Made by a program: the position numbers and the translations under genes | In this document: in pieces, positions 3,138-60,422 of the stretch | Position numbering within the stretch: the stretch's first letter is position 1 | Layout: each line of letters starts with the position of its first letter | Sequence record: PV261924.1 | DNA: 64,000 nt | Reading direction: 5' to 3' (one strand) | Notes under the pieces: generated by a model | Databases searched by the model: none | The model's input: only the letters and a program-made list of their open reading frames with translations | What the model was told of the DNA's origin: nothing

Positions 3138-3147
3138 CACATGCACC

Positions 3148-3172: not shown

Positions 3173-3200
3173 TCTTCGGTCAGTATTCTCCGTTTAAAAA

Positions 3201-3374
3201 TTAATCTGTTGTTAGGACGTGTCTACAGAACCTCCTGGCGGAACTATCTATGATACCACATTCTGAAATGCATTGGAAGTATTCGGATACTTGATCATAT
3301 TTGTCATCAACAGTTAGTTTTTCATCCCACTCCCAGGATGCAAGTTCATTACGTGAGACAAGATTTTTCATCAT
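3201..3374 (-). CDS. Small hypothetical phage protein (57 aa)
   Basis: Start moved from 3479 to the ATG at 3374, which follows SD GGAGGTG; MMKNLVSRNELASWEWDE..., CxxxC..CxxxC-like Cys pattern. Confidence 0.7.
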   Translation of the reverse strand: MMKNLVSRNELASWEWDEKLTVDDKYDQVSEYFQCISECGIIDSSARRFCRHVLTTD

Positions 3375-3444
3375 CACCTCCAAATCACATATTATATAGA
3401 GATGTTTGTGTAACTTCACGAACATTTGTGTTATTGTTACTTTA

Positions 3445-5154
3445 TTAAATTTTTCTTGAGAAACCTTTATGTTTTTCAAACTTGACTACATTTTCAAACT
3501 TATCGTCCATACCAGTTTTGTGACTGATAACGAATATGTTTGCGTCTTTGATAGTGTATCGAATAATTTTGAGGAACTCATCCGTTCCAAAACCGTCTAG
3601 TGAACTATCGAAGACCTCATCCATAATGAGGAGATTTGTATTGACTGAGTTCTTGACCCTTGCAATTTCCCTCCAAGTGAATAGTAGTGCTAGGTCAATT
3701 CTCATTTTCTCCCCTTCACTAAATGACGGATAAGAAAAGTCTTCGTGAATGGGAGATTCTACAGTTTCGTTGAATTCTTCATCAAGTTTGAAATTAATGT
3801 AAAAGTCCATCATCTGTAGATACTTATTAACTTGTTGGTTGATAAGTGGTAGATACTTTTTGATGATCTTTGCTTTTACACCACCGTCTTTGAGCAGACT
3901 ATAGATGAAATCGTGGTAAGAAATATTGTCCTTGTGCTTTACCAGTTCATCATATGTCTTATCAAGACTATCTCGTAAGGTTTCTAACTTCTCATGCTCA
4001 GAATTTCGGTTCTCGATCTGACTGGTAACAGTTTGAATTTCTGATTCCAGTCCCCTGATCTGTCGTTGAAAACCAGAGATCTGTACATTGAAAGAAGAAA
4101 TGTCATTAAGTGTTTCTGAGATTTTAGTGGATACAGTTTTAAAATGTGATTCCCTCAGTTCTTCATCTTTAATCGCCGATTGGAGTTTTTCAAACCCTTC
4201 TCTGAGCTCTTCTGCCTTAGATTGGGAATCACTAATTCTATTTACTCTAAACAACTCCTCAATGTCCTGATTACAGGTAGGACAAACCGTATTCTCAGTA
4301 AAAAATTTATGTTCCTTGACAATACTTTGTATACGTTGAGACAGTTTACCTTTGATACTACCAAACTCCCTCAATCTATCCTGGGCATTATCAACAGTTT
4401 TCAACTCCTTTTGAAGGTACTCCAATACTTCTTCTTGTTCAAAACTCTGTTTGAAGCATCTCTCAATTTCTTGATTCAGACCCTCAATCTTATCAGTCTT
4501 CTTCTTGATAGTATCCTTACTCTGACTCTCAATCTTTTCGATAAAGTCTTTTTGCATATCGACCTTATCTTTCAAGTTCTCCTTCTTCAGTTCTAGAGTC
4601 CTGACCTCATCACGAATACCACGTATCTTACCTTTGATGACATCATTCATCGAAGAGAAGATTTTGATATCCAATAGATCTTCTACCACTTCTCTACGTG
4701 CAGAGGTGGGGAGTTGCATAAACGGAACAAAGGTAGAAGAACCCAGGATCACAATCTGTGTAAATGACTTGTAGTTCATCTTCAACACATTCTGTTCCAA
4801 CCACTTCTGTTGATCTAATGCAGATGCAGATTGATCCAACTCTTCATCATTACGATAGATCTTGAAGATGTTTGGTTTGATTCCACGTTGAATCTTCCAC
4901 TGAACAGAGTTCACGTCAAACTCAATCTCCACAAGACAAGCCTTCTCGTTTGTAGAGTTAATCAACTGTGCTTTATTGATCTTACGAAAAGACTTACCAT
5001 ACAGAACAAAAGTCAGTGCATCAAGAATGGTGGACTTACCTGCACCATTCGATCCAATGATTAATGTCGTACTTGTTTCGTTAAGATTGACTTCTGTTGG
5101 GTGGTTCCCCGTTGATAAAAAGTTTTGCCACTTAATCTTTTTGAAAACTATCAT
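3445..5154 (-). CDS. g46: Recombination endonuclease subunit gp46 (SbcC/Rad50-like)
   Basis: Walker A GSNGAGKST, zinc hook CPTC, signature FSEGE, Walker B LLIMDEVFD, coiled coils. Confidence 0.97.
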   Translation of the reverse strand: MIVFKKIKWQNFLSTGNHPTEVNLNETSTTLIIGSNGAGKSTILDALTFVLYGKSFRKINKAQLINSTNEKACLVEIEFDVNSVQWKIQRGIKPNIFKIYRNDEELDQSASALDQQKWLEQNVLKMNYKSFTQIVILGSSTFVPFMQLPTSARREVVEDLLDIKIFSSMNDVIKGKIRGIRDEVRTLELKKENLKDKVDMQKDFIEKIESQSKDTIKKKTDKIEGLNQEIERCFKQSFEQEEVLEYLQKELKTVDNAQDRLREFGSIKGKLSQRIQSIVKEHKFFTENTVCPTCNQDIEELFRVNRISDSQSKAEELREGFEKLQSAIKDEELRESHFKTVSTKISETLNDISSFNVQISGFQRQIRGLESEIQTVTSQIENRNSEHEKLETLRDSLDKTYDELVKHKDNISYHDFIYSLLKDGGVKAKIIKKYLPLINQQVNKYLQMMDFYINFKLDEEFNETVESPIHEDFSYPSFSEGEKMRIDLALLFTWREIARVKNSVNTNLLIMDEVFDSSLDGFGTDEFLKIIRYTIKDANIFVISHKTGMDDKFENVVKFEKHKGFSRKI

Positions 5155-40700: not shown

Positions 40701-42398
40701 CTGAATAGTATCTCCAGTAAAGGTTGCAGCAGTTCCAACTACACCAAATACTGACTTAACATCAGATAATGAGAAATTTTTATCACTTGTAACAAATCTT
40801 GCATCATCCAATATCCCATTGAAGAGAAGTCTCTCCCCTTTATGGAATTCACCTTCAACATTATAAGCAGTTAGTGCAGTACCTGCTGTTACATTATGCT
40901 TAAGATAACCCTTTGCACCACTTGACTCACCCTTGATAAAGGTTGACGTGGTAAGTGTGATTGGTTCGTTGAGTGTGATGTCAGTATATGTCTGAACATC
41001 AAATAATGATAAATCCCATGTATTCAAGTTGGGGAATGCAGTATCATACGAACCACCTTCTAAAACAAAGTCATATACTCTTGCAATACCAATTTCTTTA
41101 CCTGAGGAGGTCAATGAATTAACACCAACTCTCTGATCTCTCAAACTCAGAGTCAAAGATGTATTAATACCAATTGTTGCAGATCCACTAACTCTGTTTA
41201 AGTTGAGAGTTGGTCCAAAACCGAAATTAACTGCTTGATCTTCAATAGTTCTTGTAGTTCTTGGCTTTCTAAAGTCAATTAAAGTAGGAGCAATGGTTTC
41301 TACCTCATATCCCCTTACATAAGCCTTACCAGGAGAGATTTTGTAGATACCAAGGTCGTCACTAGGAACATTACCAGATTGAGTGACTTGAGTCGAATTA
41401 TAGATACCTCTATTTCCTTCATTGTTGTTAAGACTATTCTTAACTGAAGTTACAAACTCTTTTACGTAATAATCGCCAGATTCATCAAAAGTTCTACGTG
41501 CAAATTCGTCACCTAAGAAGTTATAATCAGTATTTTTGTTAATAAGACGTAAAACACCGTCTTTTACTTCCGATAATTGAACAAAATTCGACTCATCAAA
41601 ACTATCAAGTGGCTTTTTCGACAAAGTTGTCGAAATTTTCAATCTATCGGCACCAGGAGCCGTAAAATTGTTAAATCCTTGGGCATTATCATTAAGTGAA
41701 GGGTCAACATCAGAAGAAACGATCTCTTCAACAACATCTAAACCTACTCGATAGGATGGGACATTAGAATATTGGTCAAGAATCAGTGTTTGGGCACTAA
41801 CATTGACAAAATACCCTCTCAGAAAGTAAACACCCTGAGATAAATTGAATGATGAACCAATAATTGCTGCATTTTGTGGAATTGTTGTTGCAAAACCTTC
41901 ACCAGCAGAAATAAAGGTAGATGCATAAGTGATATTCTTACTAGTAAGGAGAACTTCACTGTCTAAAAACGTACTTACATCCTCATCAGAGTTTGCAGAA
42001 TTCTCATAGTTCAAATAAAGGGTATATGTGCCTCTTTCGGACTCTTCGTCTGTGATATATGTGACAACTTTTGCGGTTACGCCAGATGTTGCACCAGTAA
42101 TTGTGGTACCAACAATTTGATCGAGATAAATGCCAACAGGAACACCCAAGAATTCGGGCTCAATCTGTACACCATAAAAATTCTGAATATATGTCAGATC
42201 ACCAGGAATTACTTTTGCACCTTCTTTGAAGAAGTGGTTACCCATCTCTTCAACTTGGTTTTGCAGAATAGACTGCAGACCAGTCAGTTCTCTTGCTTGA
42301 ACAGGAAAACCAGGTTTGAATAGAACCTTATAATAATTCGACTGGGGATCAAAGTCGTCAAAATATGGGGCGACATTGAGATTAGTTTCCTGTGGCAT
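34779..42398 (-). CDS. Large virion structural protein (VrlC-like / DUF4815-type)
   Basis: MPQETNLNVAPYFDDF, VQARELTGLQSILQNQ, TAPGADRLKI, DPLAQTF. Confidence 0.85.
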   Translation of the reverse strand: MPQETNLNVAPYFDDFDPQSNYYKVLFKPGFPVQARELTGLQSILQNQVEEMGNHFFKEGAKVIPGDLTYIQNFYGVQIEPEFLGVPVGIYLDQIVGTTITGATSGVTAKVVTYITDEESERGTYTLYLNYENSANSDEDVSTFLDSEVLLTSKNITYASTFISAGEGFATTIPQNAAIIGSSFNLSQGVYFLRGYFVNVSAQTLILDQYSNVPSYRVGLDVVEEIVSSDVDPSLNDNAQGFNNFTAPGADRLKISTTLSKKPLDSFDESNFVQLSEVKDGVLRLINKNTDYNFLGDEFARRTFDESGDYYVKEFVTSVKNSLNNNEGNRGIYNSTQVTQSGNVPSDDLGIYKISPGKAYVRGYEVETIAPTLIDFRKPRTTRTIEDQAVNFGFGPTLNLNRVSGSATIGINTSLTLSLRDQRVGVNSLTSSGKEIGIARVYDFVLEGGSYDTAFPNLNTWDLSLFDVQTYTDITLNEPITLTTSTFIKGESSGAKGYLKHNVTAGTALTAYNVEGEFHKGERLLFNGILDDARFVTSDKNFSLSDVKSVFGVVGTAATFTGDTIQSRVRNFGSANISAESGSTSLISIPADPGFSFVGIVTVGNIVRYSRPTLDVASFARVTGVGQTNITVEAVTTVSGICNGALPTSVETIQNFELLSTKGVGGPGSGNLANNDTLYSAFPKTNISSVNLIGSELVIRRQYTTSITNNSTPIINTEDKEVFLPFDEERYTLIRSDGSTEVLTEDRFEFTNGSKSLQINGLGSNDTNTKLITTIRKTDVTSKTKLKNVSQDLIINKSSRAASGIGSTTLDDGLTTGNYPYGTRVQDEVISLNTVDVYKIYGIFESDDNSDPVCPNMTLSQLDGITATTNDLIIGEILTGQTSGAKAIYLQKLDDTAIYFTYLNDTTFQNSEVISFESSTVNGVSSNVKLGSKEVTTDFKFFNGQRGTFYDYSRIERRGEAQIPARKLRVYFASSSYDNADEGDITTINSYVGYNYGTEIGGVQDVRVSDIIDVRPRLTDYVVAENVRSPFEFDGRNFADGQNGNLQSSSHIIASDESLTVTYDYYLPRADRVFIDKEGILSVLEGAPDDDPRLPDSLSGVMNIANVFLPAYLFDTTDAEIKFIEHKRYQMSDISKLEQRIKNLEYYTSLNQLETNTLNLFVEDANGNNRFKSGIFVDNFTTLEPQDTSIGIRNSIDTERGVLRPSHYTTALNLQLGTTAVTGIGTTSDANQDSNFAEVVGANVKKSGRILTLDYTDETWLQQPFATRAENVTPYLVQFWQGNIELTPEVDVWIDVNELEVNDVMMEGSFRGVAEALGADIRTRRDGSRAGVSPVIWNSWQTVGVDVNTSLSNNQSTQTSSTTRQTSNTNTQGSRRTGQVRTTNTTTQRTNTTTTDNNIRATTSVNLSQNRTGRQFFVNERIDTESLGSRVVRREIINFMRSRNIDVTATSFKPFTRVYSFFDDVDVNNYVTPKLIEIEMIHGTFVVGETVRGRMDDGGSQVTNGSTIPTIDFRVATTNHKYGPFNSPTDVYDSNPYNRDISIPAIYSASSTILNIDTFSLQSQDFPQFSGWISRSMILTGASSGAQARVSNVRLITDRVGTLQASYFVPSPNNPANPIFETGRSSFRLTSSRTNSTIEGLVSTAGESIFYSQGDVDTTQETTLSVRNATVRRADLTQRRNIGDTATSNTITITDTNTDTQSTSTTSVRVIPPRIDPLAQTFLVDDPTGVFITKVDLFFVTKDENIPVLFEIRETNLGTPTDKVLPFSFKSVDPKDVNLSDDGTVATTITLDAPVYLNPEKEYAMVLLSHSTEYRVWISRLGEADVTTLGQEAGQILVTEQPLLGSLFKSQNASVWTPSQYEDLKFNLYVANFKSQGSVSFYNPELPSDLAQIDPNGLTVNSREIRVGLGTTVSDSGLVVGRTVKQLGNGAQGTLVAFAGSVTSNFTITNAGVGYTPSSATFTYTGVALTAVTGKGVNATADITIENGVATEAVVRAGGTGYVVGDVLTPVQVGSVNLGSGIQLSVNELLGNNTLVLDNVQGNFTTNSAYPLYYENSVGFTTELNDVGGNVIPVSPINVTEQGNYIRVFQRNHGLYSNVNRVTISDVRSDLVPNTLSQEYGFDTTTFITIEGLATDFETFENLGVGGTNPGYVKIGDEIISYTGVNGRTLTGVTRGIDNTTIATHSSGELIYKYELNGVSLRRINTSHLLANVVSSELDEAPIGLDYYYVKVQMNANGTNRAPANAAGFPPLYFKENKLAGGPLVKGTYNLPYNLITPKVTTITPQGTNLISQVRTISASSVSGNQESYLDKGYKQVTIFDKNYFDGQRMVASAQNESNLLNGDTFAGNKSFEMQFTLLSGNSRISPVIDLDNASVVYTMNRISRPVTDYVADFRVNGTEDDPNRFTYVSKNVTLENPASSLQVLLDGYVSNYSDIRVFYALNQDVPVEETIFVPFPGYKNIDINGAILDISSNNGTPDKRVPKVDAYVPEPTQDQYKEYKFTIDEVKPFKTFRIKIIGTSTDQSTVPMIRNLRVLSFA

Positions 42399-42403
42399 AT
42401 CTC

Positions 42404-43963
42404 TTAGAATTGCAAGATAACTTTAACGTCTTCTTTCTGTGAAGATGATCTGGTGACTGATGGCCTATTATCAACATAAATGATGTCACCAGAGTACTTT
42501 TGAGACTCTGGATTTGAAATTCCACTATTGAATTCCTGACCCAGATAGTAGGTACGACTATTTATTGTCGTAGATACACCTGAAAAGTTTTGGTCAATAT
42601 TGAGTGTGTTACCTGAAGTTGGTGAGATTTGGATACTACCACCTGTTGTAGGTGATGATGTAAACTTCAATTGTTCAAAACCATATACAGGAACAACGTT
42701 CTGAGTGCCATCAGTATTGAATCCTGCAGTCCTTCTGTCCTGCCAATACTTCAAAATACCAGTCTGTTGGTCATAAGAAACAACTCTACCGATGGCTGTT
42801 GAACCTAAACCAACGGTTTGTGTAACAAAACTGTCTGCGGTAAAGACTGCTTCACTGTAACCAGTACCAACAAGCTTCAATGCATAGAGTGCACTGGCTT
42901 TATCTTTGGTCAAATTGGTTGTTGAGTTGTAATTTGTTGGATTTTTGACGATTCCAACCTGTGCAAACTGGTTTCCAGTGATAAAATCGGGATTTTGGGT
43001 GTCATTTTCAAATCTAGCATAAGAAAGTACGTTATAAGCACCCAATTCACGATAAATATCGGCACCATGACCACCTGGAGGAGGAATAATTACGTTAAAA
43101 ACGGGTGCGACACTGCCATTTGGGACACCACCATTCTCTAAATCGAGAGTTCCGAAGGAATATCCACTTCCTCCTCTTGAAATTGTCACAGATTCGACTT
43201 TTGAGTCGTTATTGATGACAACTGTAGCCTCTGCACCACGTCCATCGCCTAAAATTGGCACTCTTGTGTAGGTAACATTGGCAGTTCCGATGCCAACTCC
43301 ACGATTTCTGATGGTAACAACCTTTAATTGACCACTTGTGCCTGCATTTTCTCTTACAGCAGAGTAAGAACTGTTGGTTTCCCAGTCAGTTGGGACTGCA
43401 ATATAGTTTGTTGAGTCAAATTTGATGATTTGATTCGGCTTAATCGTATAAAGATACTTCCAAATATAACCATCACCACTGCTTCCAGCCTCTCTTGGCT
43501 CCAAATCTGTGAAATTTGGCTCGTCAAGAGAAGGACCACCTCTAAAACTATTCTCTGGATTAGCGTTATTGAACAGACAGATATAAACTTTATACTCACT
43601 ATTCATTACATAATAGTTGGAGTCGTAAATGTCATACGATCCAGATGGTTGAGATGGGTTATCTCTATCAATATCATTCCTCCACATGTCATATGTGGTA
43701 CCAGATTGCCAGGTAATTTTCCTTATAACCTGGCTTACATCACCCGAATTAATCTTTTTAAGGGCCAACATGGTGTCCCAGTAATAGTTGGAGTCATCCA
43801 AACTATCTTTTGGGGCAGGTGGATTCGAGTTCCAATCACTCTGAAACTCAGGAGCATCTGGTAGACCAATCCACGCATAGTAAGAATTAGAAGAATCTTG
43901 TACAGAATCGACAAAATTCTTCGCATTCAAGATACGCAGTTGATCAGTAATTATCGCAGCCAT
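42404..43963 (-). CDS. g8: Baseplate wedge subunit gp8
   Basis: MAAIITDQLRILNAKNF, YYVMNSEYKVYICL, DGYIWKYLYTI, SGDIIYVDNR. Confidence 0.9.
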   Translation of the reverse strand: MAAIITDQLRILNAKNFVDSVQDSSNSYYAWIGLPDAPEFQSDWNSNPPAPKDSLDDSNYYWDTMLALKKINSGDVSQVIRKITWQSGTTYDMWRNDIDRDNPSQPSGSYDIYDSNYYVMNSEYKVYICLFNNANPENSFRGGPSLDEPNFTDLEPREAGSSGDGYIWKYLYTIKPNQIIKFDSTNYIAVPTDWETNSSYSAVRENAGTSGQLKVVTIRNRGVGIGTANVTYTRVPILGDGRGAEATVVINNDSKVESVTISRGGSGYSFGTLDLENGGVPNGSVAPVFNVIIPPPGGHGADIYRELGAYNVLSYARFENDTQNPDFITGNQFAQVGIVKNPTNYNSTTNLTKDKASALYALKLVGTGYSEAVFTADSFVTQTVGLGSTAIGRVVSYDQQTGILKYWQDRRTAGFNTDGTQNVVPVYGFEQLKFTSSPTTGGSIQISPTSGNTLNIDQNFSGVSTTINSRTYYLGQEFNSGISNPESQKYSGDIIYVDNRPSVTRSSSQKEDVKVILQF

Positions 43964-43982
43964 GTTTAGAGGACTTTTTTCT

Positions 43983-43990
43983 TATTTATT
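43983..43990 (-). promoter_or_regulatory. T4-type late promoter (g8)
   Basis: AATAAATA. Confidence 0.7.
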
Positions 43991-45320
43991 ATGATAATGT
44001 GAGACTTGTGGAACCGATACCAGCAACTGTAAATGTTAGAGTAGTTCCAGAGAACGTAATCTGAACACCTTGAGTAGATGCCGCACTTACAAATCCACCA
44101 ATTGCAGTAACAATACCAGTGTTATACTGATTAGTTGCCGTAACAACACCTAATGTCGATACACCAGTAACTACTAATGAATCTGCATTTATATTTGCAG
44201 TGTTTGCAACACCAGTGTAACTAATTGTCGAAATACCAGAATTTGTGGTAACACTTATATTGGATCCAGCAGAGATAAGTGTAGTAATTCCTGTTACATT
44301 AGAAGCATCAGCACCAGTCAGAGTGGTGACTACACCAGTCATTCCTGAACCATCAGCACCAGTCAGAGTGGTTACAACACCAGTCATTCCTGAACCATCA
44401 GCACCAGTCAGAGTGGTTACAACACCAGTCAGGTTCGATCCATCACCATAATATGTTGCACCAGTTACGATTCCAAGAGTAGAAATACCAGATACTTTGA
44501 AATAACCTAATACATCAGCACCACCATGTTTTGTTTCAAATCTCTTATTGTTGTTATAATACAGCTCAACACCATAGTTTCCGTCAACGTTAGTTGACAT
44601 TACTTGTGTTGTTCCAGCACCACTAGTAAAGTTTTGGGTATCTGCCTTAATATTTAAAGCACCTGTATTAGCTCTAATGACATTCCCATCAGAGTCATTA
44701 TGGAAGATAGTAAATTCTGATTGTTCTCCTAAGATAAATTGTTTGTCATCAGTCATCAATAAAGATGAACCAAGACTTACAGTACCCGTAAGTGTGGATA
44801 CTCCTGAAACATTAATACTTCCTGCAGAATGACCTGCACCAACAAACATTGATCCGAAAGTACCAACACCCGTGATATTAATATTTCTACCTGTTACTTC
44901 ATCATAGACAATATCATCAGACACATAAAGATCACCACCAACATACAAATCACCACCAGTGGTAGTAATACCGCCTTGACTTGCAAGTGTTGTGATACCA
45001 GAAGTAAGAAGTGTAGTTACGGTAGTTACACCTAACGTTGTAATACCAGCTACCTTTAGATTTCTAGAGATATCTACATCCGTCGTCGCAATGGAGACTG
45101 GAGTAGGTGCAGAAATTTCAACGTATCCTGTTGTTGTATTTACAGCAACATTTGTTCCTGCAGTGATGGTGGTTACAACACCTGTAGCAAGTGATGAACC
45201 GTCACCAATGAGATTATAGATCTCACTAAAGTTACTGTTGATTTTAATACCACCAGAAACTAGTGAATCACCTGTCCCATCATTAGGAGCTGAGCCAGTG
45301 TTAATACCTTGGTATGCCAT
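43989..45320 (-). CDS. Baseplate-anchored fibre with T4 gp9/gp10-like N-terminal domain
   Basis: INTGSAPNDGTGDSL..GGIKINSNFSEIY; Thr/Gly-rich shaft. Confidence 0.8.
   Translation of the reverse strand: MAYQGINTGSAPNDGTGDSLVSGGIKINSNFSEIYNLIGDGSSLATGVVTTITAGTNVAVNTTTGYVEISAPTPVSIATTDVDISRNLKVAGITTLGVTTVTTLLTSGITTLASQGGITTTGGDLYVGGDLYVSDDIVYDEVTGRNINITGVGTFGSMFVGAGHSAGSINVSGVSTLTGTVSLGSSLLMTDDKQFILGEQSEFTIFHNDSDGNVIRANTGALNIKADTQNFTSGAGTTQVMSTNVDGNYGVELYYNNNKRFETKHGGADVLGYFKVSGISTLGIVTGATYYGDGSNLTGVVTTLTGADGSGMTGVVTTLTGADGSGMTGVVTTLTGADASNVTGITTLISAGSNISVTTNSGISTISYTGVANTANINADSLVVTGVSTLGVVTATNQYNTGIVTAIGGFVSAASTQGVQITFSGTTLTFTVAGIGSTSLTLS
44306..44430. repeat. 45-bp in-frame tandem repeat, about 2.8 copies
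   Basis: CATCAGCACCAGTCAGAGTGGTTACAACACCAGTCATTCCTGAAC at 44306, 44351 and 44396; encodes GVVTTLTGADGSGMT. Confidence 0.95.
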
Positions 45321-45346
45321 CTACTGTAGGATCCTTTTCTATGTTT

Positions 45347-45354
45347 TATTTATT
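45347..45354 (-). promoter_or_regulatory. T4-type late promoter
   Basis: AATAAATA. Confidence 0.7.
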
Positions 45355-48300
45355 TTAAGTTTGATAGTTATTAAACTTCAAAGGTCTGAATCTCTGAACC
45401 AATGGTGAGCTAGTAATACCTGTGTATGAATTAGGTGTAAACTCAAGTGCATCTGTGGTTGCTCTATTCAAGAATTGAATCTTACCCCATGTGTATTCAC
45501 CGAGATTTCTCCCTCTTATGAAACCAGCTACCGTGGTACCAAATCCAACGTTTGCAACCTCAACTCTTCTAATTGCAGTTGTTCCAAGACCAACTGAGGT
45601 CAGATCAACTGTGGAATTATAAGCAGCAGATACCTGATAGATATTGTCACTTGTGCTTGTAGACAGACCAAAGTTTGAAAGATTGACCACAAAATAATCA
45701 CCAGTATTGAGTTGACTGATAGTAACTGCGGTACCTACAATATTGGGATCTCTCATGTAAGAATTCTCTGGAATATAAAGTTCAAGTGTTCCAAGAGCAC
45801 CTGTGGACTGTGCATATCCAACAATCTGTCCAAGATCACCAAAGTAAGAACTGACACCAATTTGTTCTCTTCTAACGGAAGGTTGTTGAATAAGAACACT
45901 AGGTGCCTGAGTGTATCCTGTTCCTGCATTAGAGACAGAAATAGATACCACTCCATCACCAGTTACTGATGCAATACCTGTTGCTCGGGTTCCATTAGGA
46001 TTATCTGGTAAAGATACTGATACTGAAGGAGTTGTTAGATAAGAATAACCGGCACCAACATTACTTACGGTAAATGATGTGATTATTCCACCATAATCAT
46101 TATCTACAACATATCCTGATGCTCCTGCTAGACTTGGATCGTCTTGTGCTGGTGTATTACCATCTTGGAATATGCTTCTAATAGTAACAAGTGATGGTTT
46201 ACTAATGACTGGAGCAATGTATGTGTTATGGAATGCATAACCTAATGGGTTATTTGCTTGAATACCTGCTTGGGTACGCATTGAATCACTCCACTCTGGA
46301 GAAAGACTTCCATTTTCCCACAAACTTGTGTATTCAAACATACAGAAGTTTAGTAAGTATAAGTATTCTTTAGCCGCTACTTCAAACGCATCTGCATCTG
46401 TTTTCCAAGTATTTCCACCATATCCTGATGAATCCCAAAAACCTCCGTCATATGCTTCTTCCATTGCTGCATATAAATCACCTGTCTGCCAATCAGATGC
46501 CAAGTAACTGTATAGTTTTATAGTATCTGCAGGTAAACCATGCATGTGTAGTGTATGGAATACGTGCTCAATAACTTCTTGTGCGTCTTGATCACCATCA
46601 CCATATCCACTACCAGTTGAGTTCAAGTACCACACCATGTCATTTTGAACAGTGGTGTCAAATAAGTTAGTTAAGTTCCAATCAATAATACCTTGGTCAG
46701 TTAGGAAGTTTGGAGTATAGTCTGCTCCTGCACCTCTTGCTACTCTTTGAATAGTTGGTTTACCTGCGTGGTAAGTTCCCGAGTCACCACTCAATGTTTT
46801 GATCAAGTTTCTTTGGGATGTTTCATTAATACCTGCACCATTTACATCTGTAAACAGTTCAACCATACGAGCAACTTTTTCTACCCATACATCTGGAACT
46901 GCTATTTGTCCGCCAGTTGTACCTGCAGATACAATTCTTACACCATTAACTGTGACTTCACGTTTGAATAAATCACTACCGTCACCAACAAGATTAATAA
47001 TTGGACCATTGTTATATTCTGGATCTACACCACTACCAGTAGATGCAGTAGCAATTGCAGATGCAATTGGTGATTGATCAATAATAACAATTCTATCTTG
47101 ATAATCTAAGAGTGAAGTTTCATTTGTAGAATTGAAGAATGGTCTTACAGTGTCTGTATAAGCAACAGCACTTGAGGTTCCAACATAAGATGTCAGATAT
47201 GCTGCAGGATAAATTGATGGTTCATACTCAACTCTATCCTTAGTTACAAAGTCACCATTGATAGTGATATCGTCAGTTTGCTTACACCATGTAAGCGGTC
47301 TTACAAGTGCTTGATTTGTAGTAATACCAGGACCATCGTAAGGGAATGTTCTTACAGTATCAAGAGTTGTAATACCAACCACAGTTCTTGGTTCTTGATA
47401 TAAACCAAATCCTTGACCCTTAGAAGAATCATTCTTAAGTTGTAAACTATCACCTACCTTGACAGTTTCAAGAATATCAACCAAAACTACGTCTACATCA
47501 GGTGTACCTTTGTAGAAGATGATCTTTGATGTGTCACCCTTTTTGGGAGCCTCTGTAAATTCAATGATAGAACCACCATTAAACTTATACGACTGATTTG
47601 GTACCTGAAGAATGTCATTGATGGTAACAATCAGACATTGTGCAATGTTGATGTCGGAACCATCTGCGGTTTCAATAGCAAATCCAGCACCAGCGATAGT
47701 GAGTGGGAATCTCTTCTCTACACCATCGAACAAGGTATCGAGTTTATCAAATACATCGAGTTCACCGACCGTAAATCCATTGAATGTGTCACGATAGGTA
47801 GTTGAAACCGTGAGTTGGAATTCATCATATGTGTAACTTGTATCAGTCTGGATACCAGTTGTACCACCAATAGAGAGTCTTAATACCTCTCCATCACCAT
47901 AACCAAATCCACCACTTACAATATCAAAGTTAACAACACTTGAACCCTGACCAACTGTGATGTCTACACGAGCACCTGTACCCATTCCAGTTTGACCGTC
48001 CGCATAGACCAGAGGAATATTTGAATAGGGAAGAGGTGCATCAATTACGATAAGAGGAGGGTTATTCTGATCAAGGTTTGCTCCAAAGTAACTGGTTGTG
48101 ATTGCAACAACTTGTCCATTCTGAACGGTTGCTGTACCGATGTTCACAACTGTTGTGATGCCAGTTGAAGAAACTGCATAACCAACATTGACTGTTTGAA
48201 CACCAACTCTATATCCAGATCCAGGATTACCAATTTCAACAGATGTAATCGTACCACCACCAGATACAAAACATGATGCACCAGCAGATATCAATGGTTG

Positions 48301-51300
48301 ATATCCAAGACCTGGAGTAGACGCCACAGAGATGATTGTTCCACCTCTTGGAATCGTTGCCATATTAGGATCAGATTCTGAAGATACACTGTCACCGAGA
48401 TAGGTGATACTTGTAATACCTGCGGTTTCTAGGAGTGTGAAGTCACCAGTGGTATTTTGAGCTCCCTGTGGTTCTTGTAAAATGTTAGAGTTAAGAATAA
48501 TTGCCTGATTAGTTGCAAAACCAGTTACATTATTACCATTTTGTACAAGTGAGAAGAACTTAGTTTGACCATTGAACTGACTTTGAATATTGTCAAAAGT
48601 GTAATTGGTGCTGTAAGTATCAACAGAATCATCAGTGATACCACTTCTCATAAATGTTCTACCTTGGAAAGTAGAATAAGTTGTGATACCAGACCAGTCA
48701 ATATTATCAGGACCTTGTGTAGTAGTGCTGAGTGGAGTTGCGCCGAATGGAGCTTCTACAAAGTGAAGTGTGTTATCGACAATATTGTAATTACCACCAA
48801 GAAGTTCAACGGATGTTCCGATGTTGTGTGTGGCAACACCAGTACCCATTTGACCTCTCAGAACTCTGAATTTGTTTGTTGCTCCAACACCAACGTCTTG
48901 AAGTAACATAATCTCACTATCAATCTTGATAATGTCATTTGCCTTGAATGATTGAATACCAACAACATCAAAGTCAACATCAAATACGACGTTTTGATCA
49001 AGTCTTGTAGATACATTGACTTCAGTTACAGGTGCCTGAATCATGTTATCAACAGCAACAAGAGCTCTAGCATTCTGGTTAGTTGCAGTCAACTTATGGA
49101 ATGTACCAACACCAACAGAAGTCAGATCAAGTGCAATTGGTGATCCAGCAAGTGCATCAGTTGCACTCTTTGCAAATCCAACAGACTTATTACTGTATTT
49201 GATGATGTAGAGTTCAGATGGTAACTTGTCTGTTGACACACCTGAAACAGTTGTCGTTGCAATACCGATAGCATTGGCAGTAGACAACTGTGAGTTCTCA
49301 TAACTATAATTTACCTTTTCACCAGTGACAAAGAAGTGATCTGGAATTGTTACCTGATTTGTTGACAGATTTACAATCGAGGAATCGTTACCAAGGAATG
49401 CTCTCTGGAAGATTGGGAGAGTATTATGTTTGAGGTTGAATGCTCTCTTCTTATCAAATTCAGTACCAGTATATGTTCCATAATCAGAGAACAGAATGTT
49501 ATTTTGTAAAGCACTGATTGACGCAATACCAACAATATTGTTAAAGTTCTTCAGACCAATACCGAAGGTTCTAACAGCTACATCAATACTTGGATTTGGT
49601 GTAAACACCAGACTTACTGAGGTACCTGATGTAACAGCACCAACTGTTCCTAAACCAGAGTTAGTACCAATACGTCCATACTTAACAATGTTTTGGTTAT
49701 TGGAGTCAAGAACATGACACTCAAACATCTCATATTCATTATTGGTGGTGTCATGGACAGTCACCATGAAGTATTCACCAGCAAATGGATCTTCATATGC
49801 TGCAATCTCATTTGCAACTGGAGAACCAGAAGCAGAGATTGACTTATAATATGATGAAAGGTTTGTAACACTCATCTCAGTAGTGTTAACACCTACTGCT
49901 GTAATATTAGTTTCAATAGAAATGATATTGGCAGTAACTGCTGTTCCTACAGTCGGTACAATGTTAACATCAATAAATCCTCCACTAATATTTGCTGTGT
50001 ATGTACCAAACCCAGATGAAATACCCTCAGTAGAATCCACATCTCCATATTGAAGAAGTTGTACATTTGTACCATCATGTAATACATTCAATTCAGTGTA
50101 GAAGTAGTTGTCTTCGGCATCTTCCAGTTGAACATGAAGTTTTGCAGATCTACTTACTGTTGGAACTTTTACCAGAGTGGTAGTTGTCGAAACTGGTACA
50201 GTTACTGATGATGATGCAATAGAAACAATGTCACCAACTTGAGTTGAACCAACACTAGTCAGACTTTCAACACCACTAAATGTGAAGTATGAAATATCAT
50301 AGTTGTTATATTCAAACAGGTTGGGGAAGAATGTAAGACCCCACTCACTGGTACCAGCACCGATGTAATCAAACGAACCCAGTGATTTACCCGTGTCGAT
50401 AGTACCGTATTGATTCACATAACCTGTTGTACCATCTTGAAGAACAGTTACTACACCGAACTGTTTTCTACTTCTCAGTTCTCTGTCCTGAACCAAAGTA
50501 AAGAACTTGTTCCATGCATACTTATTATCAAAGAAATCAACGATGGAATACTTTGTTTCTCTTGGATTACTATTAAACTCACCACTAAAGTCATCAATCT
50601 TAAGAACTCTGTTACCTCTTGATTCAAAGTAATCTACGAGAATTTTGTTTTCAAATACAATCTCATTAGAGATGGTTTTACCACCATTAATATCAAGAGT
50701 TAATTCAGTAGCACCATCAAAGTCAGGGAAACAATTAAGCATTCCCTCCCCGATCAGATCAACAACGGTTTCAATCTGGAAATCAACTGCTGAAGCAATA
50801 CCAGCAGCATTGTTGTCAATAACGAGATCAGCAAACTTCTCAAAACCTGCAGTGTGGTTCAGTGAACTAACTGCATCATCCCATGTCTCATATGGAACTC
50901 TTGATTTGAGTGAATATGAAAAGTTCTGATAATATTCGTTGTTTGGAATGACTTGAAGATTGTCGTTCAGGAATCCAGAATTGGTCTGCCATCCATCTAC
51001 GAACGTTGCACCAACACCAAGTCTGATAGTCGAATCAAAATCAATATTACTGATAATGTTTGCTTTGTTTCCAGATGATTGGGACTCTAAAATTGTGCCA
51101 ACTTCAAAATCGTCTTCAGACGAAACAAATAAATAACCACTTGTGGCATCAAATCTTTCAACCCTACCAACATAGCCAATATTAGTAACTCTTTCTCCCT
51201 CAAAGAAGTTTGTTGTGACGAGTTTTGAATCAAATATTGGGAAGAATGACTCAGGCGTTACAGAACCAGAAATGGAACTTGTAACTTGACCAGGGAATTC

Positions 51301-54300
51301 GCCTGGTGCAAGATAATCAGTCAGATTGTATTCAATATACGCATTTGCACCACCAATTTGACTATCGAGTGCAGTTACCTCAAACAACGAATAGTTATAA
51401 TCTTCAGAGTTGTAACCTCTACCAGTAGTATTGAAACCAATTGCAACGTTCTCAACAATTACCTTCTCACCAACTTTAAATGGCCAATCTTTTACTTCAC
51501 TAAACTGTTTGGAGAAGGTAAGTCTGACAATCTTGTTGGTCGAGTTATAAGATACAGAACTTATGCTGAAACCATTTGTATTTTGAGTGGGAATAAATGT
51601 TGGTGGAACATTATTCAGTGATTTAGTGTTTTCGATAATATTGACTTCATTGTCACCAAGTTCATAATCAAGTTCGATATCAGTGATAACTTGATTAGTA
51701 AATCCATCAATAACAATAAGATCAGGTGCCTGGCTGTAGTTGACACCACCAGATGAAATACCGATTGATTCAAAAGAACCAAGAGGATCTACTCTCAATA
51801 CCTGTGGTAAATTACCTACAACATTAAGAGTCTTATCGGATGGATAACCAAAACCAATGTAGTTGAATTTAGTTCCTAGAACACTACCAATGGTGGTAGA
51901 GGATGGTTGAATTAGTGCACCTGTACCATTCTTACTCGTAACTGAAGAGAAACCTGGGAGAGACTTATACCCTACGCCTTTGTTGAGTGCATTGATCTTG
52001 TTGATTGGCCCATTTGCAGTCAATGATGAAGTATCATACTTCATAGTTGCATTGGTGGTACCATATGAGACTACAGTGTCGTAGTCAAAAGGAATATTAT
52101 ATTCAAAAGTATCTGATGTAACACCAACTACATTATAAATTCCATCAAATTTGTTTTTAGTAAGATTAATACTATTGTTATTGATAACAGTATCATCTTT
52201 AAACAATCTCAACTTGACTGGAGGAATAATATCCAAATTGTCGGGACTGAATCCGTAGTAGAGATTATTTGGAATGTTATCACTCATAAACAGAGTGAGA
52301 TTTGCAGTAGTATCTACACCAACCACACCAGACTTTGTAACCTCAAAGTTTCTATCAGTTCTTGTTGTCCAGAACTCATTGACTTCTTGTGAGTCACTAT
52401 AGATGAACATATCAAATGCAGAATAAGTAATACCCTTATCAACAAATGAAAGTGATGTATCAGATAAATCAAACTTGATGTATTGATTCTTTTGTGCCCT
52501 TACTCCAGGGTTGATTTTGGAAAGGGTTCCCGTGGTGGCAGAACCAACATTCACAAAAGTAGGATTCTCACTCGATAGTTCTGACAGATATTCAACTAGT
52601 TTAATCTTATTATTCATATAAGAGTAAACATAATACATCCCAGATGCGGTCAAATTCTCTGATGGATCACCAGAAGTATAGATAACTTTATCACCTGTAA
52701 AATACTTGTTCTCAGGAACGATGAATGTATTGTTATTGGTATTGATGCCAGCCGGTTCAATAGTGTCAGGATCAAACACAATTCTTCTATTGAAGTCATC
52801 ATATTTGACTTGAATTGTGGTTGTGGTTGTTGGATTGACATCAATAGTAATGATGTCACCTCTCTTCATACCATGAGTTTGTGCGGTAGATACCGTGACA
52901 ACGTTTTTTGAGACTCTACCTTTAATTACAGATGTTATGTTGGTATTGAAGCTATGGTAACTTCCAAGACCTACAGCGGATTCGAAGTATAATAACCCAC
53001 CCTTCTCGGTGTTAATACCAACATATTGACCAACAGAGTTCACACCAACTCTTTGAGTTGCGATACCAATAATATCTTTGGATAATGGAACTGCAAAGAT
53101 ATTTCTGGTCTCATCAAGATTAAATGTAGGTGTACTTGTAATACCACTCCAACACGCAATAGATGTTCCACCATTGGTATAATAAGTCATTGGAGTGTTT
53201 AATGACAACTTATGATCTGGGAGATAGATCTGTTGTTGATCAACTCTGACCTGTGTTAAACCAACACCTGGATTTGAGAATGTAATTGTAGTCGCAGTAC
53301 CTACAGTTGATGTACCTACACCAACTGCCTCGTTTGGAGTAAAGTATAACTGTTTATTAATTGTAAGATTTCTCTGAGTATTGATACCTGTTGAGAGGAA
53401 TCTGAGTTTTCTAGGATCATCTCTAACAATAGTACCTGCAGAGTGGGCAACTGCAAGTGTTCCATCAACACCTCTAAGAACTCTGACTCTACCAGATTTT
53501 TCATCAATGTTGAGAACTTTTAATTTTTCTCTTTCAATTCTGAGAATATCATTTGCTCTAATCGAATCCTCACCGAAAGGACCATTCATATAAACGTAGG
53601 TCACAATACCAGTGACAGTATCAGTTCCTATTCCTAGTGATACATACCATCTTTCACTTGATACACCGACCGAATACGACCCAGCGAATCCTTTGTAGTA
53701 TGAAGATAACCCATCAATGAAAATTGTATCTAATGGTAAGAAGTTGTGTGGAGCTGAAGTAATACCAACAAACCCATTAGCACTTCCTGTACTTGTAAAC
53801 TCCACATTTTCATAAGATGTAGTGGCAAGACTTACACTGTTTACATTCTTACCCTTAAGTTGAGATACTCTAAAGTTTGCATTTCTACCGCCAGTATTAG
53901 TTGAATTGAGTTCAACCCTATCACCAATCTTGTATCCATCACCTGGATCCAAAATAGCCATACCATCAACACTACCTGATGATGTTGCAGTAATGTCTAA
54001 AGACTGATTTCTAAGTTTGTCTGAATTGTAAATGTAATCATATTGACTATTTCCGCCATTTGTGAAATAGTTCTTAGTATTTCTAAACCACCCATCTCCC
54101 ACAATATTGTAATGAGTTTGATTAGACGCTGACTTGAAGTTGAATGGAATTGGTAAGGAATTATAATCGTTTCCAATTACATATGGGAACAATGGTCTTC
54201 TGTAGTTATTAAATGGACCAGAAGAATCTACAGTATCAGAGATAGTACAGAAGTATGCATATACACCGTTTGGATAATCTGGTGTTACACAGAAACGACC

Positions 54301-57300
54301 ATTGTGTTCATCAAGATCACCGTCACCAGCATAGATATAGTCATCTACAAAGAATCCGTTAGGGAATGCATTGTATGAAGGTCTATTGACAGGAGTATTC
54401 TTGAGTTTGTAACTTGTAACCATTCTACGAATGTTACCAGTTCCATCGATATTATCGAAACCGTATGGACCATAGATTGGATTACCATCGTACGCCCAAC
54501 CTACGATTGGTGAGTGATACAAACTATCAATTTCTTCTCCACCAACACTTAAAGTTAAGTCAAAAATACCATATTTGATATTGTCCTCCCCAAAACCATT
54601 TAATGAGTTTAGTGACTCTCTTAATGGTCTAGGTGCATAAACTGCTGCATACTGAAGTGACTTGTTTGAAATGTTCTCCTCAATAATGCAGTCATCATCT
54701 TTAAAGTTGGAAAAGTTTCTTTCAAATAGGTTGATATTCCATCCTCTAATATTTGCCTGAGTTTTTGCACCAGATCCAGCAGGTATTACATCAATTGTGG
54801 TCTTACCAGTAACATATCCTGCACCACCTTTTTGAACATAGACACTTTCTATCTCACCATTATTAATGATTGGCACTAAGATTGCAAAATTACCTGTCTC
54901 ACTTACAATGTTGAGATCAGGTGGTGCATTGTAACCAGAACCACCTGAGTTTACAATAACCTCAACAATCTTACCATTGTTGATAATTGGTGTTAGTTTT
55001 GCTTTTGAACCAGACTCAAAGGTGATTTCGGGTTGTCTTCTAAAATCAACAATAGTTGATGCACCATAACCAACACCACCATTGGTCAAGTCAATACTTA
55101 AGATCTCTCCTCTAAAGACAGGTTGTAGTTTTGCTTCATAAAGAAGAATATTACCGATGAATGGATCATCACTAATCAACCAGTTTGCATCAGCACTAAC
55201 CAAAACATAGTATGGATTTGTGATCTCTGCTTCAGTATCAGTCCATGCAAGTACTGATACAGGAGTGATAATATTCTCTTCAATTGGTGATTCAATAATA
55301 TAAAGTTCTTGGAAGTCCTCGACAAAGGTCTTATCGAACGATGCTGCTGCACCTTCTACTTCAACAGTGATTGGTGGATAGTTAAATGAACCTACGCCCT
55401 GTTTTGTGAAGTTAATACAGATTCCTCTATCATAATAATAGTCTCTTTCTACAGATCCAGTACCAACTTCTGTCAGTGCAAATGCATCATCATTAATCTT
55501 TTTAACAAAATAATCTTTATCTTCACTCAGACCCTCAACTCTTGGAGTTCCTCTTGTATATCTTACAACTTCTTTCGATTTATAACCGTGATTTAAAATT
55601 TCAACTCTATCTGATACTGTATTGATACCAACTGTTGAAATAGTTCTCTTTTTGTTTTCGTAACCTACACCAGGATTAGTAACTACAACACTTGATACAA
55701 CCTGCTTAAGTTCTTTTGCAACAAGATATTGCACACCATCACCATAACCTGCTAAATCAACAGTGTTGATACCTGCAAATACATCTCCTTTTGTGGTATG
55801 AAGTTGAATACTCTTTTGGCCAGTTACAAATACAAAATACTCACCACCAGTATTCAGTCCAACAATACCAGATGTATTTCTTGGTTCATAGATTACACTT
55901 TCACCATCTAAGAATTTGTGATCGGTCTCAAATGTAATCTCATTTGTTGTGAGATTTACATCACTTGGGAAATTGGCGACGAAAGAATTTTCAAGTTTGA
56001 TTGAAGTCATTCTTGGTTCTGCCTGTGCACCAGAACCATTACCACCCTTGATTGTAATCGTTGGTGGTGCATAATAACCCATACCAGGGTCAGTAACATC
56101 AAGCTTTACAAGTTGACCTTTTACGTTAGCAACACCTGTTGCACCAGTTCCTACCTCATCGACAATCTTTACTACTGGTGGATTGATAATATCGTATCCA
56201 GTTCCACCACTTGTCATAGTGAAGTCAAGAATATCACCATAATAAACACTACTGGATGACTTATAGTTTAACAACTCAAGACCATTAACAAAAATACCTG
56301 TATATCCTGAAGTTGTTTTCTCTATTCTCTTTCTATTAGTAGGACTTAGAATCTTTCTGTAGATACCCTGTGGTTGAATCGTTTTACCATAAAAATCAAG
56401 GTAACTTAAAGAAGCATTTACTACAGACCCATTAAATGTAATATATGATTCTCTTGTAAGGTCTGCATTACTTCTTGCAAGTTTGATTTCACTTTCATTT
56501 ACTCTGTAGACAAAGTAAGAACCAGTGGTAACTCCATCAAAACCATTACCTGCAGATTGGAAATATACTGAGTCACCTGTGTAGAAACCGTGATCGGGTA
56601 ATGATGTTGGGTTAGTTGGTAATGGTAAAATGTCGGTGCTCAGTAATGATGCAGAGAAAGTTACTTTCTTATCGTAAGTATTTGTCTCAATGTCATTATA
56701 TTTTGGTAATGAGTTAGATGATATAAGAACATCACCATTAAACTTTGCATATGTATTCTGTACATTGGCAACAAAATTCTTGATATAAGAATGACTTGTA
56801 GACGAACCCTTGAGTAATTGATTCTCAAGATAGAATGTACCTGAAAGATTGATCTGTTGTCCGAACCTTACATTAATCTCATTCTCTGATACAATTCTAG
56901 TGACTGTTCCGAGGTTTGATACAGTGCCATCTTCGTTTTCATATCTGAGTTCATACCCCTCTTGGAAGAAGTGATCATTATAAAGTTTAAAGTTATATAC
57001 GAATGCATCAGCATCAATTACAGAACTTTCAGCAATTTTAAATTTTGTTTGGACGTTAAGGACATAGTTATTTGCTTTCTTTCCAGGTGCCTCATATCCA
57101 AATGATTTAATCTCAATAGTGTCATTCTTTTTGAAGTAATATGTTGGATCGTTCTGTACAAAATCCTTCAGGGTAGATGTAAATCTAACCCTGATTTCTT
57201 GTGAGGTATCAATACCAACATAGGCATATGAGAAAGAATCTAACTTAACGTCAGACTTCTTATTCAATGAATTGGTCAGACCAGATACGTTAAAGAACTG

Positions 57301-58379: not shown

Positions 58380-60422
58380 TTAGTAGGATGCTCTGCTAAC
58401 GATTGCGGTACCAAGTGGTTGTCGGGGAGTTGTGGTCAGAAGTGCCTGTTCTTGTTCAGGGGTTTCGACAGTAGTAATTGGTGTACCTCTTACTAATGCG
58501 TTTGATCCATAACTTGATGAAACAATGTAGTTTGTTCCTGATACATCATTTCCAGAGGAAATGTTGTCAGCAATAACATCGACTGTTGTATTATTTACAT
58601 CCAATTGTAGATAGAGATCTTGGAGACCAATCACATCATTAGAGTATGGAGTTGCCGATACCTCTACCAATGGTGTATTTCTATTTACGATGGTAGAAAT
58701 GATGTTAATTGGGTTGAGTTTGATTTCTCCCTTCTTGTAATCAATAGTACCTACGTTCTGTTTTACAATAATTGGTTCAGTAGGTGAATTAAGTTTGAAG
58801 AGGAATACCGTACCTTTCTCAAGGTCACCTGTGGGTTTATCACCAAGGTAAACCGTACCACTAATACCACTGACAGTGAAACCAGATGATTTGATATTGT
58901 AACCAACTAGGTTTCCATCGAAGACTGCACTATGACCATGATTCTTCACATGGAAACGATTACCGAAGCATAATTCGTACTCAGCAAACTTATTAGGAGA
59001 AGCAACCATATCTCTTCTCATATTCACATTTGTGATGTTAGAAGTTACAGACTGATGGCTACTATCAATAACCTTTTGGAACTTGGAATATTTGAAACGA
59101 GCACCAAACTGATTAAGTTCTGATGAATCAGCGTAAGCAGTCAAGTTCTGTAATACTACATTCTGAACGAATGATGCATTAGGTGCAAGGTTTGTATTGT
59201 AGTATGTCTCACAATCTGCTTCAACATACAGATACTTCAGGTCAATGATCTCTGCTCGAATACCAGCAACTGAGTAACTTTTGATTCTCTGTTGAAGGTT
59301 TTGTTTGATTCCACTTGATAAGAAGACACCATTATATGGTTTGACACTGATGAACACCTTACCAAACTGTGGTGGGCTCAGATCCTCACCACCAAATGCT
59401 GATACTGATTCAGCTTCTGGGTAGATCTGTGGAATTAATGCTTCATAATCAGCAGCAGTGACTGCTCTGTTCTGTGATGCGTAAATCTGCGGTGCATACT
59501 TCTTAATCGATTCAACAGATTCAATTGATTTACCACCTGTTGATTGTAAGACCGTTTCAATAATCGATACACCAGAACTAATTCCTGCACCGTTATTATC
59601 GTTTAGGTTACCAATAAATTGAAAGTTTGCAATGTTGTTTCCACTAGCTCCATTACTTGTGATATAACTTGCTTCAATATAATTCTTATCTTCAAGTTTG
59701 ACACCAAAGACACCATCACCAAATAGTAATTCATATCTTTCTTGTGAAATCTCTTGAAGGAAATAAGCTCTGGTTGACTTAGTTACATCAAACAGACTTG
59801 TAAACAATTCAAACTGTCTTGTTACAGTTGAACTCTGGGTGTCTCTTACAACGACATTCAAGAGATCAGTATCAATACCTGAGTTAGGAAGAATAAACTT
59901 CTGAAGTTTATTACTACCATCTACCGTAAAAGTTTGTTTAATGTATGTTCCTTCGTAGATATTAATATTTCTAAATGATGCAGTACCAGTTGAATCTACT
60001 GGAACAGTAATATCATTTGGAATTGAGAATATAAAATTTCGACTCTTATTGACACCAGTTGATCTAGATGTCATGACTGCACCAGCCTTAAGTGTGACTG
60101 ATACTGCGGTTGTATTACTTACGTCTACATCAAAAGATACTTGGGCGGTTGATGCTTTTCTTGATCTAGGTACATACCCAATATTCCTCGCGAGAGACAC
60201 CACGTTCTCCCTCAACGTGGCGCTATCGATGAATACCTCATTAGATACCATATTGGCATTATATGAGGTGATATACGTATTATATGCTAACGTATCGATG
60301 ATTGTGCTTAGATTCGATCCTTCAAAGTCGTAATCAGTGAAGTTTGAGTTCGAACGAAGATAGTCCTTGATAGACTCTTTGATCTGATCAAAATCTAAGT
60401 TGCTAAAATTAACTAGAGGCAT
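58380..60422 (-). CDS. g6: Baseplate wedge subunit gp6
   Basis: LDFDQIK, FTDYDFEGS, SATLRENVVSLARNIGYVP, QNRAVTAADY. Confidence 0.95.
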   Translation of the reverse strand: MPLVNFSNLDFDQIKESIKDYLRSNSNFTDYDFEGSNLSTIIDTLAYNTYITSYNANMVSNEVFIDSATLRENVVSLARNIGYVPRSRKASTAQVSFDVDVSNTTAVSVTLKAGAVMTSRSTGVNKSRNFIFSIPNDITVPVDSTGTASFRNINIYEGTYIKQTFTVDGSNKLQKFILPNSGIDTDLLNVVVRDTQSSTVTRQFELFTSLFDVTKSTRAYFLQEISQERYELLFGDGVFGVKLEDKNYIEASYITSNGASGNNIANFQFIGNLNDNNGAGISSGVSIIETVLQSTGGKSIESVESIKKYAPQIYASQNRAVTAADYEALIPQIYPEAESVSAFGGEDLSPPQFGKVFISVKPYNGVFLSSGIKQNLQQRIKSYSVAGIRAEIIDLKYLYVEADCETYYNTNLAPNASFVQNVVLQNLTAYADSSELNQFGARFKYSKFQKVIDSSHQSVTSNITNVNMRRDMVASPNKFAEYELCFGNRFHVKNHGHSAVFDGNLVGYNIKSSGFTVSGISGTVYLGDKPTGDLEKGTVFLFKLNSPTEPIIVKQNVGTIDYKKGEIKLNPINIISTIVNRNTPLVEVSATPYSNDVIGLQDLYLQLDVNNTTVDVIADNISSGNDVSGTNYIVSSSYGSNALVRGTPITTVETPEQEQALLTTTPRQPLGTAIVSRASY

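Follow-up and report, generated by a model that had tools for sequence, protein, structure and literature searches.

In this study, we analyzed a stretch of 64,000 nucleotides (nt) from sequence record PV261924.1 (the whole of this stretch is called the window below), which was near-identical to the Synechococcus phages S-B43, RN05-S, and RB11-B (Kyanoviridae; host Synechococcus sp. MW02), and focused on a block of 316 amino acids (aa) lying in frame near the C-terminus of its giant gp7-position baseplate protein. The comparisons strongly supported the block as a discrete and mobile cassette of ∼951 nt that is traded in frame among phage tail and baseplate genes. The domain family to which it belongs is unnamed, of extracellular type, ∼300 aa in length and of mixed alpha/beta fold. 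With a probability of roughly 0.6, we read the block as a mobile cassette of this family that carries a predicted metal-dependent hydrolytic or ligand-binding site for a polymer of the cell surface.

Phage S-B05 has the same host as the S-B43 type and is ∼100% identical to it across the rest of the 30 kb compared. Its gp7 was 99.7% identical to that of the window through aa 3776, carried three residues in place of the block, and matched again from aa 4093 on, so that the S-B43 type and S-B05 form a natural pair of almost identical phages differing essentially by the block. The C-terminal 781 aa of gp7 were matched by 176 phage records, 85 of which hold the block; it lies inside gp7 in three of these 85 (the S-B43 group), and the ∼90 other phage records matching the gp7 flanks were without it. 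Two stretches were the only ones below ∼98% nt identity to S-B05 within the profiled positions 41000-51000, namely 45500-45994 directly downstream of the block and a second patch at 44250-45000 (94-96%) that reaches into the gp9-like gene. This pattern suggests that the downstream divergent tract is likely a recombination tract brought in together with the block from an unsampled donor.

In the translation of gp7, ...IASAIATASTGSG is followed by the block and then by ...VVDNDY/GGIITSFTVSNVGAGY, and the block ends 245 aa upstream of the C-terminus. The original prediction had placed an in-frame inserted block of about 315 aa here, and this was borne out, with all the strings that it quoted being present, including the His-rich motif QEVIEHVFHTLHMHG at nt 46537-46581 and the string FEVAAKEYLY. 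The break in composition that it described was real in direction and modest in size, the share of T, G, V, and S being 0.33 in the block vs 0.40 in the flanks, and that of aromatic residues plus His 0.13 vs 0.10. Its impression of a repeat unit split by the block was roughly right as well. The intact unit of S-B05 gp7 starts ...ATVTVSVAGTVTGFTIS..GQGY, and the first strand of this ...G.GY... unit is swapped in the window for a Gly/Ser linker, the block, and the residues NDY; because block and linker replace the first strand, the insertion lies at the N-terminal edge of the unit and not in its middle.

Close copies of the block were found in phages Syn33, S-RIM2, and S-RIM12 (84-91% protein and 86-90% DNA identity), and there the host was a different gene, coding for a 1721-aa PHROG-708 "baseplate wedge subunit" with the block in mid-protein (aa 720-1041). 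This gene stands between gp9 and gp8, a place at which the window has no such gene, and its protein is without the block in all other cyanophages. Homology to Syn33 in the DNA spans window 47038..46085, and these limits differed by at most 8 nt from the block coordinates first predicted. The S-RIM12 isolate KX349325 has lost the block between the same limits (2992-3944 in the Syn33 locus L002), with a net length difference of 951 nt from S-RIM12 and with the frame kept. Furthermore, the synonymous substitution rate (dS) between Syn33 and S-RIM2 was 0.26 in the block and 0.96 and 1.15 in the flanks, which indicates that the cassette is younger than its host genes. The ratio of nonsynonymous to synonymous rates (dN/dS) of the block relative to the Syn33 and S-RIM2 copies was 0.19-0.22, and to judge from this ratio the block is under purifying selection. 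In this protein of Syn33 (Syn33_094, L002 835-6000), S-RIM2, and S-RIM12, the block with ∼165 more residues is nested between two halves of a YHYH domain (aa 517-554 and 1042-1083 in Syn33); these halves are contiguous in gp7 (aa 1285-1407) vs 460 aa apart in Syn33_094.

Among the uncultured viral contigs of IMG/VR, 329 stretches encoded relatives of the block. The best 80 of these 329 (75-93% aa identity), on which the counts of flank contexts rest, formed at least 22 N-flank and at least 25 C-flank clusters, none of them containing the window's own context, and the metagenomic proteins with the domain included tail-fibre-like (PHROG 9729), gp9-like (PHROG 677), and gp7-like ones. A domain present or absent in two host genes and set in at least 22 flank contexts agrees with the mobility that had been proposed for it. 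Across contexts the domain ends were constant (D-P-E-Y-N-N-G... at the start and ...S-G-Y-V-V-D at the end) and the adjacent residues varied. No extra conservation of synonymous sites was seen at the cassette ends relative to the interior, so the sharp limits reflect selection for an intact fold rather than a recombination site in the DNA. A 7-nt direct repeat, TGTAGAT (Val-Asp codons), bounds the cassette on both sides in the window (47009-47068 and 46040-46115); as it is absent from Syn33, it is probably due to chance or microhomology. Some viral or metagenomic proteins (L166 and P0009, P0010, P0017, and P0049) seemingly contain two tandem copies of the domain, the C-flank of L166 beginning anew with D-P-E-Y-N-N.

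Scanned exhaustively with HMMER, 1.84 billion representatives yielded a family of 215 clusters at 50% identity, and all source names in the family were "hypothetical". Neither Pfam nor NCBIfam contained a family for the block or for the domain region in 48 members, PHROG had none for the block alone, and Pfam gave none for 15 members at E ≤ 10; among PDB sequences, phmmer found no match, and a profile search returned 0 matches at E ≤ 10. The cellular members are marine and belong to Flavobacteriaceae, Opitutales, Acidimicrobiia/Actinomarinales, Rhodobacterales, several Gammaproteobacteria, SAR324, and Prochlorococcus. They show two main architectures: lipoproteins of ∼400-480 aa with a lipobox signal peptide and the domain at the C-terminus, and proteins in which the domain comes first and is followed by RTX, DUF4214, or dockerin. 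In addition, some members are fused to Peptidase_S8 (subtilase), matrixin-like (M10), Lipase_3, He_PIG, or cadherin repeats. Together with the other phage tail proteins, these lipoproteins and secreted RTX-type proteins are stand-alone and differently fused homologues of the kind that the original prediction had suggested looking for. In a neighbor-joining tree, the phage-borne copies formed one clade, sister to lipoproteins of Acidimicrobiia/Actinomarinales (64-68% identity), and the copies of Prochlorococcus were the most distant; phages thus appear to have captured the domain a single time.

The block was modeled alone with AlphaFold2 (AF2) from a 48-sequence alignment, giving a mean predicted local distance difference test score (pLDDT) of 95.8 and a predicted template modeling score (pTM) of 0.94. 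The model places, in order, a beta-hairpin, helices, two further strands, the motif helix 149-168, and helices carrying E195 and E225/Y226. A free-standing homologue with 31% identity was predicted with the same order of elements (pLDDT 93.6, pTM 0.90). The confident model, the free-standing bacterial homologues, and the dN/dS of 0.19-0.22 identify the block as an independently folding unit. Foldseek searches with the two models against PDB (best E 0.45 and 0.54) and with one against BFVD (best E 0.44) gave no match at E ≤ 1e-3, and template modeling scores normalized to the query (TMq) did not exceed 0.30. Two very confident models without a counterpart in PDB mark a new domain family that deserves a name and an experimental structure.

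Conservation was counted over 327 distinct full-length copies, by identity class. Nine residues, namely Q98, E158, H159, H162, T163, E225, Y226, E249, and W250, were 100% conserved in every class; K55, Y108, D134, A196, Y207, and G267 reached at least 97% in every class, and N264 at least 95%. The block of the window keeps every family-invariant residue. H167 occurred almost exclusively in the phage clade and its nearest relatives; for H271, the 57 distant homologues checked offered no counterpart. E-H-x-x-H occurs once in the block, at residue 158, and a pattern search of the block for HExxH or HxxEH found neither. On an ideal helix, E155, E158, H159, H162, and H165 fall inside a 120-degree arc and T163 outside it. 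Candidate third metal ligands in the model are E195 (93-100%, helix 188-198) and E225 (100%, helix 216-234), both on downstream helices. An E-H-x-x-H core and a Glu of KEY that are invariant family-wide fit a functional site, and our best guess is that the block has a metal-dependent hydrolytic or binding site. In the literature searched, we found no mention of an E-H-x-x-H enzyme motif or of the insertion of this block in gp7. The coordinates of all features are given in Table 1.

Table 1. Features of the gp7-position gene and of the inserted block (positions are those of the window).
Feature	Position	Strand	Basis or remark
Host gene, gp7-position baseplate protein, 4337 aa	45355..58368	minus	Single unbroken open reading frame (ORF)
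YHYH domain (PF14240), gp7 aa 1280-1377	54238-54531	minus	E = 2.5e-26; sole Pfam match in the 4337 aa
Block: Gly/Ser linker, domain, and NDY; gp7 aa 3777-4092, 316 aa	46093..47040	minus	Translation; missing in S-B05 gp7
DNA cassette	46085..47038	minus	blastn; limits of nucleotide homology to the copies in another gene of Syn33 (90%) and S-RIM2 (86%)
Domain core common to all family members, block residues 5-313, D-P-E-Y start to G-Y-V-V-D end	46102..47028	minus	phmmer and hidden Markov model envelopes; junctions in 60 contexts; AF2 pLDDT ≥ 90 for 298/316 residues
Q98-R99	46744..46749	minus	Column shares; Q invariant, R 70-100% across identity bins
Motif helix of 20 residues, block 149-168, polar stripe E155, E158, H159, H162, T163, H165	46537..46596	minus	DSSP of the AF2 model
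Core motif E-x-x-E-H-x-x-H-T, block 155-163	46552..46578	minus	Column shares; E158, H159, H162, T163 invariant
E225-Y226 (distal E of ...KEYLY)	46363..46368	minus	Column shares and AF2 model; invariant, in predicted helix 216-234
P248-E249-W250	46291..46299	minus	Column shares; E and W invariant
C-terminal 245 aa of gp7, ...G.GY... beta-repeat units resumed	45355..46092	minus	Translation; 83.7% aa identity to S-B05
Divergent tract directly downstream of the block	45500..45994	minus	Sliding identity; 77-92% nt identity to S-B05, recovering to 98-100% beyond

The following course of events would account for these results. Phages would have acquired the domain once, with lipoproteins of marine Acidimicrobiia/Actinomarinales as its nearest cellular relatives, and the cassette has since been shifted to many sites within their baseplate and tail-fibre proteins. 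The Gly/Ser linker joins the domain, in the S-B43 lineage, to the start of a beta-repeat unit near the end of gp7. The domain may hang from the edge of the baseplate, where it would serve as an accessory module meeting the host envelope. The helix face with E158-H159-x-x-H162-T163, together with E225-Y226, E249-W250, and Q98, would form a metal-dependent hydrolytic or ligand-binding center, whose chemistry would be zincin-like (two His, a Glu, a base, and a Tyr) without membership of the zincin family. A bolder proposal, which we advance tentatively and hold to be rather improbable as it stands, is that the block is an extracellular metallo-enzyme of new fold with a permuted E-H-x-x-H / E-Y / E-W center, widespread on the surfaces of marine bacteria, captured once by phages, now spreading as an in-frame cassette through baseplate and tail-fibre genes of cyanophages, and acting there on an envelope polymer of picocyanobacteria. 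If it were true, gain and loss of a metallo-enzyme cassette would help to tell near-identical phage strains apart.

Several points weigh against this account of origin and function. First, the neighbor-joining tree carries no support values. Second, some contigs of "bacterial" metagenome-assembled genomes (MAGs) could be mis-binned phage DNA, although one of the Acidimicrobiia/Actinomarinales sister copies (L015), which sits on a contig of 1.02 Mb, speaks otherwise. Third, E155 and H165 are not universal, as the most divergent group has lost both. The E-H-x-x-H-x-x-H motif of the original prediction therefore held for E158, H159, and H162 and failed for its third His, whereas the distal Glu of KEYLY that it had singled out is E225, invariant in all 327 copies. 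Fourth, a non-catalytic binding module would likewise be found fused to several unrelated hydrolases and to tail fibres.

A non-catalytic binding role is a serious rival to the catalytic reading, although on the whole we think it somewhat unlikely. The block would then be an adhesion or receptor-binding module, possibly metal-mediated, that provides the baseplate with an extra contact with a ligand on the surface of a host or particle. Such a role would suit a domain whose fusion partners include many unrelated catalytic domains (S8, M10-like, and Lipase_3) as well as tail-fibre, gp9-like, and gp7-like proteins, as is typical of binding modules, and whose presence or absence differs between very close strains, as is the case for host-recognition modules. 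However, many bacterial lipoproteins have the domain as their sole large domain, the invariant E, H, H, E, E, Y, Q, and W include more residues of catalytic type than most lectin sites do, and ∼300 aa is large for a module of this kind.

The original prediction regarded the domain as zincin-like. As a highly divergent true zincin or gluzincin metallopeptidase, the block would have 149-168 as its active-site helix and a Glu of a later helix as the third zinc ligand, and it would cleave a protein of the host envelope at adsorption. It shares with zincins and gluzincins (thermolysin-like, M1, and M60/enhancin type) a pair of His on one helix beside a Glu, further invariant Glu and Tyr residues downstream, and a predicted order of sheet plus helices resembling the generally known topology of zincins; in all, two His, three Glu, and one Tyr are invariant. 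Moreover, the highest-scoring Foldseek matches, all of them non-significant, were repeatedly of zinc-metallopeptidase type: 8cgp_B (TMq 0.21), mimivirus R519 (0.25), a Siphoviridae "metalloprotease" (0.17), and 4fxq_A (0.24, probability 0.21). We take this resemblance as a lead only. The motif itself differs, being E-H-x-x-H with His at i and i+3 (spacing 3), whereas HExxH has a spacing of 4, and neither HExxH nor HxxEH is present. Peptidase profiles of Pfam and NCBIfam gave 0 matches on the 48 members, nor was there any on the 15 members at E ≤ 10, and the same was true of the profile search against PDB sequences at E ≤ 10, all structural matches having E ≥ 0.44 and TM ≤ 0.30. Membership of the zincins is on this evidence unlikely and was not supported.

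In the sense of the "Ferrojan horse" idea, the block might also be a non-enzymatic surface domain that captures or mimics a metal such as iron. The invariant cluster of His and Glu, the exclusively marine distribution, and the occurrence in bacterial surface lipoproteins would all be compatible with this idea, but no link to transport genes was found in the neighborhoods examined and Foldseek gave no likeness to known metal-binding folds, and we regard it as very improbable. An intein or selfish insertion that is excised, or that is without function for the phage, would likewise be in frame, sharp-ended, and patchily distributed. Inteins need an N-terminal Cys or Ser nucleophile and a C-terminal His-Asn plus nucleophile, and often contain an endonuclease. 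The block matched no Hint, intein, or endonuclease profile of Pfam, has a lone and non-conserved Cys, and ends in TGSGVDPEY... and ...GYVVDNDY without nucleophile or terminal His-Asn; with free-standing secreted bacterial homologues, a dN/dS of 0.2, and ends without extra synonymous conservation in addition, this explanation was rejected as scarcely credible. Finally, the view of the block as an invariable structural element of gp7, distinct in composition only, has nothing more than the in-frame position in its favor and was rejected as practically untenable, since S-B05 gp7, 99.7% identical upstream, and all other records matching the gp7 flanks are without the block and 3/85 block records have it in gp7.

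The preferred reading, a mobile cassette with a predicted metal-dependent site, can be set beside known systems. Phage tail proteins are known to gain accessory domains by insertion, and the Ig-like domains of phage structural proteins are one example. Another is given by the carbohydrate-binding modules that baseplate proteins of lactococcal phages contain (title of PMC4742702). The block resembles these as an optional, self-folding module placed in frame on a conserved structural protein, shared among tail proteins, presumed to contact the cell surface, and present or absent between close relatives. It differs from them in that its family is unnamed and without a fold match in PDB, in its ∼300 aa with an invariant Glu/His site, and in being nested within other domains (a beta-repeat unit and YHYH) with identical limits in at least 20 contexts. 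What is new in the block is the domain without name or fold match, the precision of its limits in these contexts, and the nesting inside other domains; domain insertion inside other domains is here documented as a route of evolution for phage host-contact proteins. Like the block, YHYH (PF14240) is an extracellular module known from marine bacteria and found again in giant structural proteins of cyanophages (gp7 and Syn33_094), yet its sequence is unrelated to the block, and in Syn33-type proteins it hosts the block.

The marine bacterial lipoproteins and RTX/DUF4214 proteins (Prochlorococcus MIT 1012, Flavobacteriaceae with Flg_new_2, and Njordibacter with 326-343 aa) contain this domain at 30-68% identity and with every invariant residue kept, and they differ from the phage block in being cellular and in having it as a free-standing or terminal domain. 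These relatives indicate a location (extracellular) and not an activity. Of the virions of marine T4-like cyanophages, which turn over a large share of the picocyanobacteria of the ocean, no part is understood less well than the giant baseplate and tail proteins. One building block of such proteins is now a cleanly bounded and recently traded module with exact limits and an invariant site, whose cellular relatives include secreted proteins of Prochlorococcus and abundant lipoproteins of Flavobacteriaceae.

With regard to the host gene, the name gp7 rests on synteny (after gp6 and before the gp9-like gene and gp8), on PHROG 2885, and on the GenBank name. Along the minus strand, the gene order is the gp6-like gene (58380-60422), the gp7-position ORF, the gp9-like gene (43989-45320), and the gp8-like gene (42404-43963). 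The 4337-aa protein matched PHROG 2885 "baseplate wedge subunit" with E = 0, and the 100%-identical proteins of S-B43, RN05-S, and RB11-B are named "baseplate wedge initiator" in GenBank. A phmmer search of the protein against PDB sequences, T4 gp7 included, returned 0 matches at E ≤ 0.01, so gp7 is used here as a label from position and annotation. The gp8-like gene is followed by a gene for 2539 aa, which is called "virulence associated protein" in S-B05.

Some minor observations concern the bacterial loci. Across 80 of them, neighbors were conserved only within taxa, and no link that would assign a function was found across them. The sole neighbor shared across phyla, with weak recurrence, was a small DUF2237-like gene (∼126-129 aa), which adjoins the domain gene in Flavobacteriaceae (L042, L045, L046, and L058) and in Njordibacter (L068; DUF2237). 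A Peptidase_S8 gene was nearby in two unrelated loci, and such a gene was seen near or fused to the domain in unrelated bacteria and phage-like proteins (L004/L005 4852-6807 and L008 4393-7797; P0037, P0215, and P0300). The homologue in a Paracoccaceae MAG (L072 4952-6197) is spread over three consecutive ORFs with two breaks and is probably a pseudogene or an assembly error. In Prochlorococcus (L074-L080 and L084), proteins of 489-583 aa begin with the domain at ∼30% identity. Among them, the copy of Prochlorococcus marinus MIT 1012 (L075 5926-7677, 583 aa) continues from the domain into an RTX repeat and DUF4214, and its gene adjoins that of a 1430-aa surface protein which likewise terminates in DUF4214.

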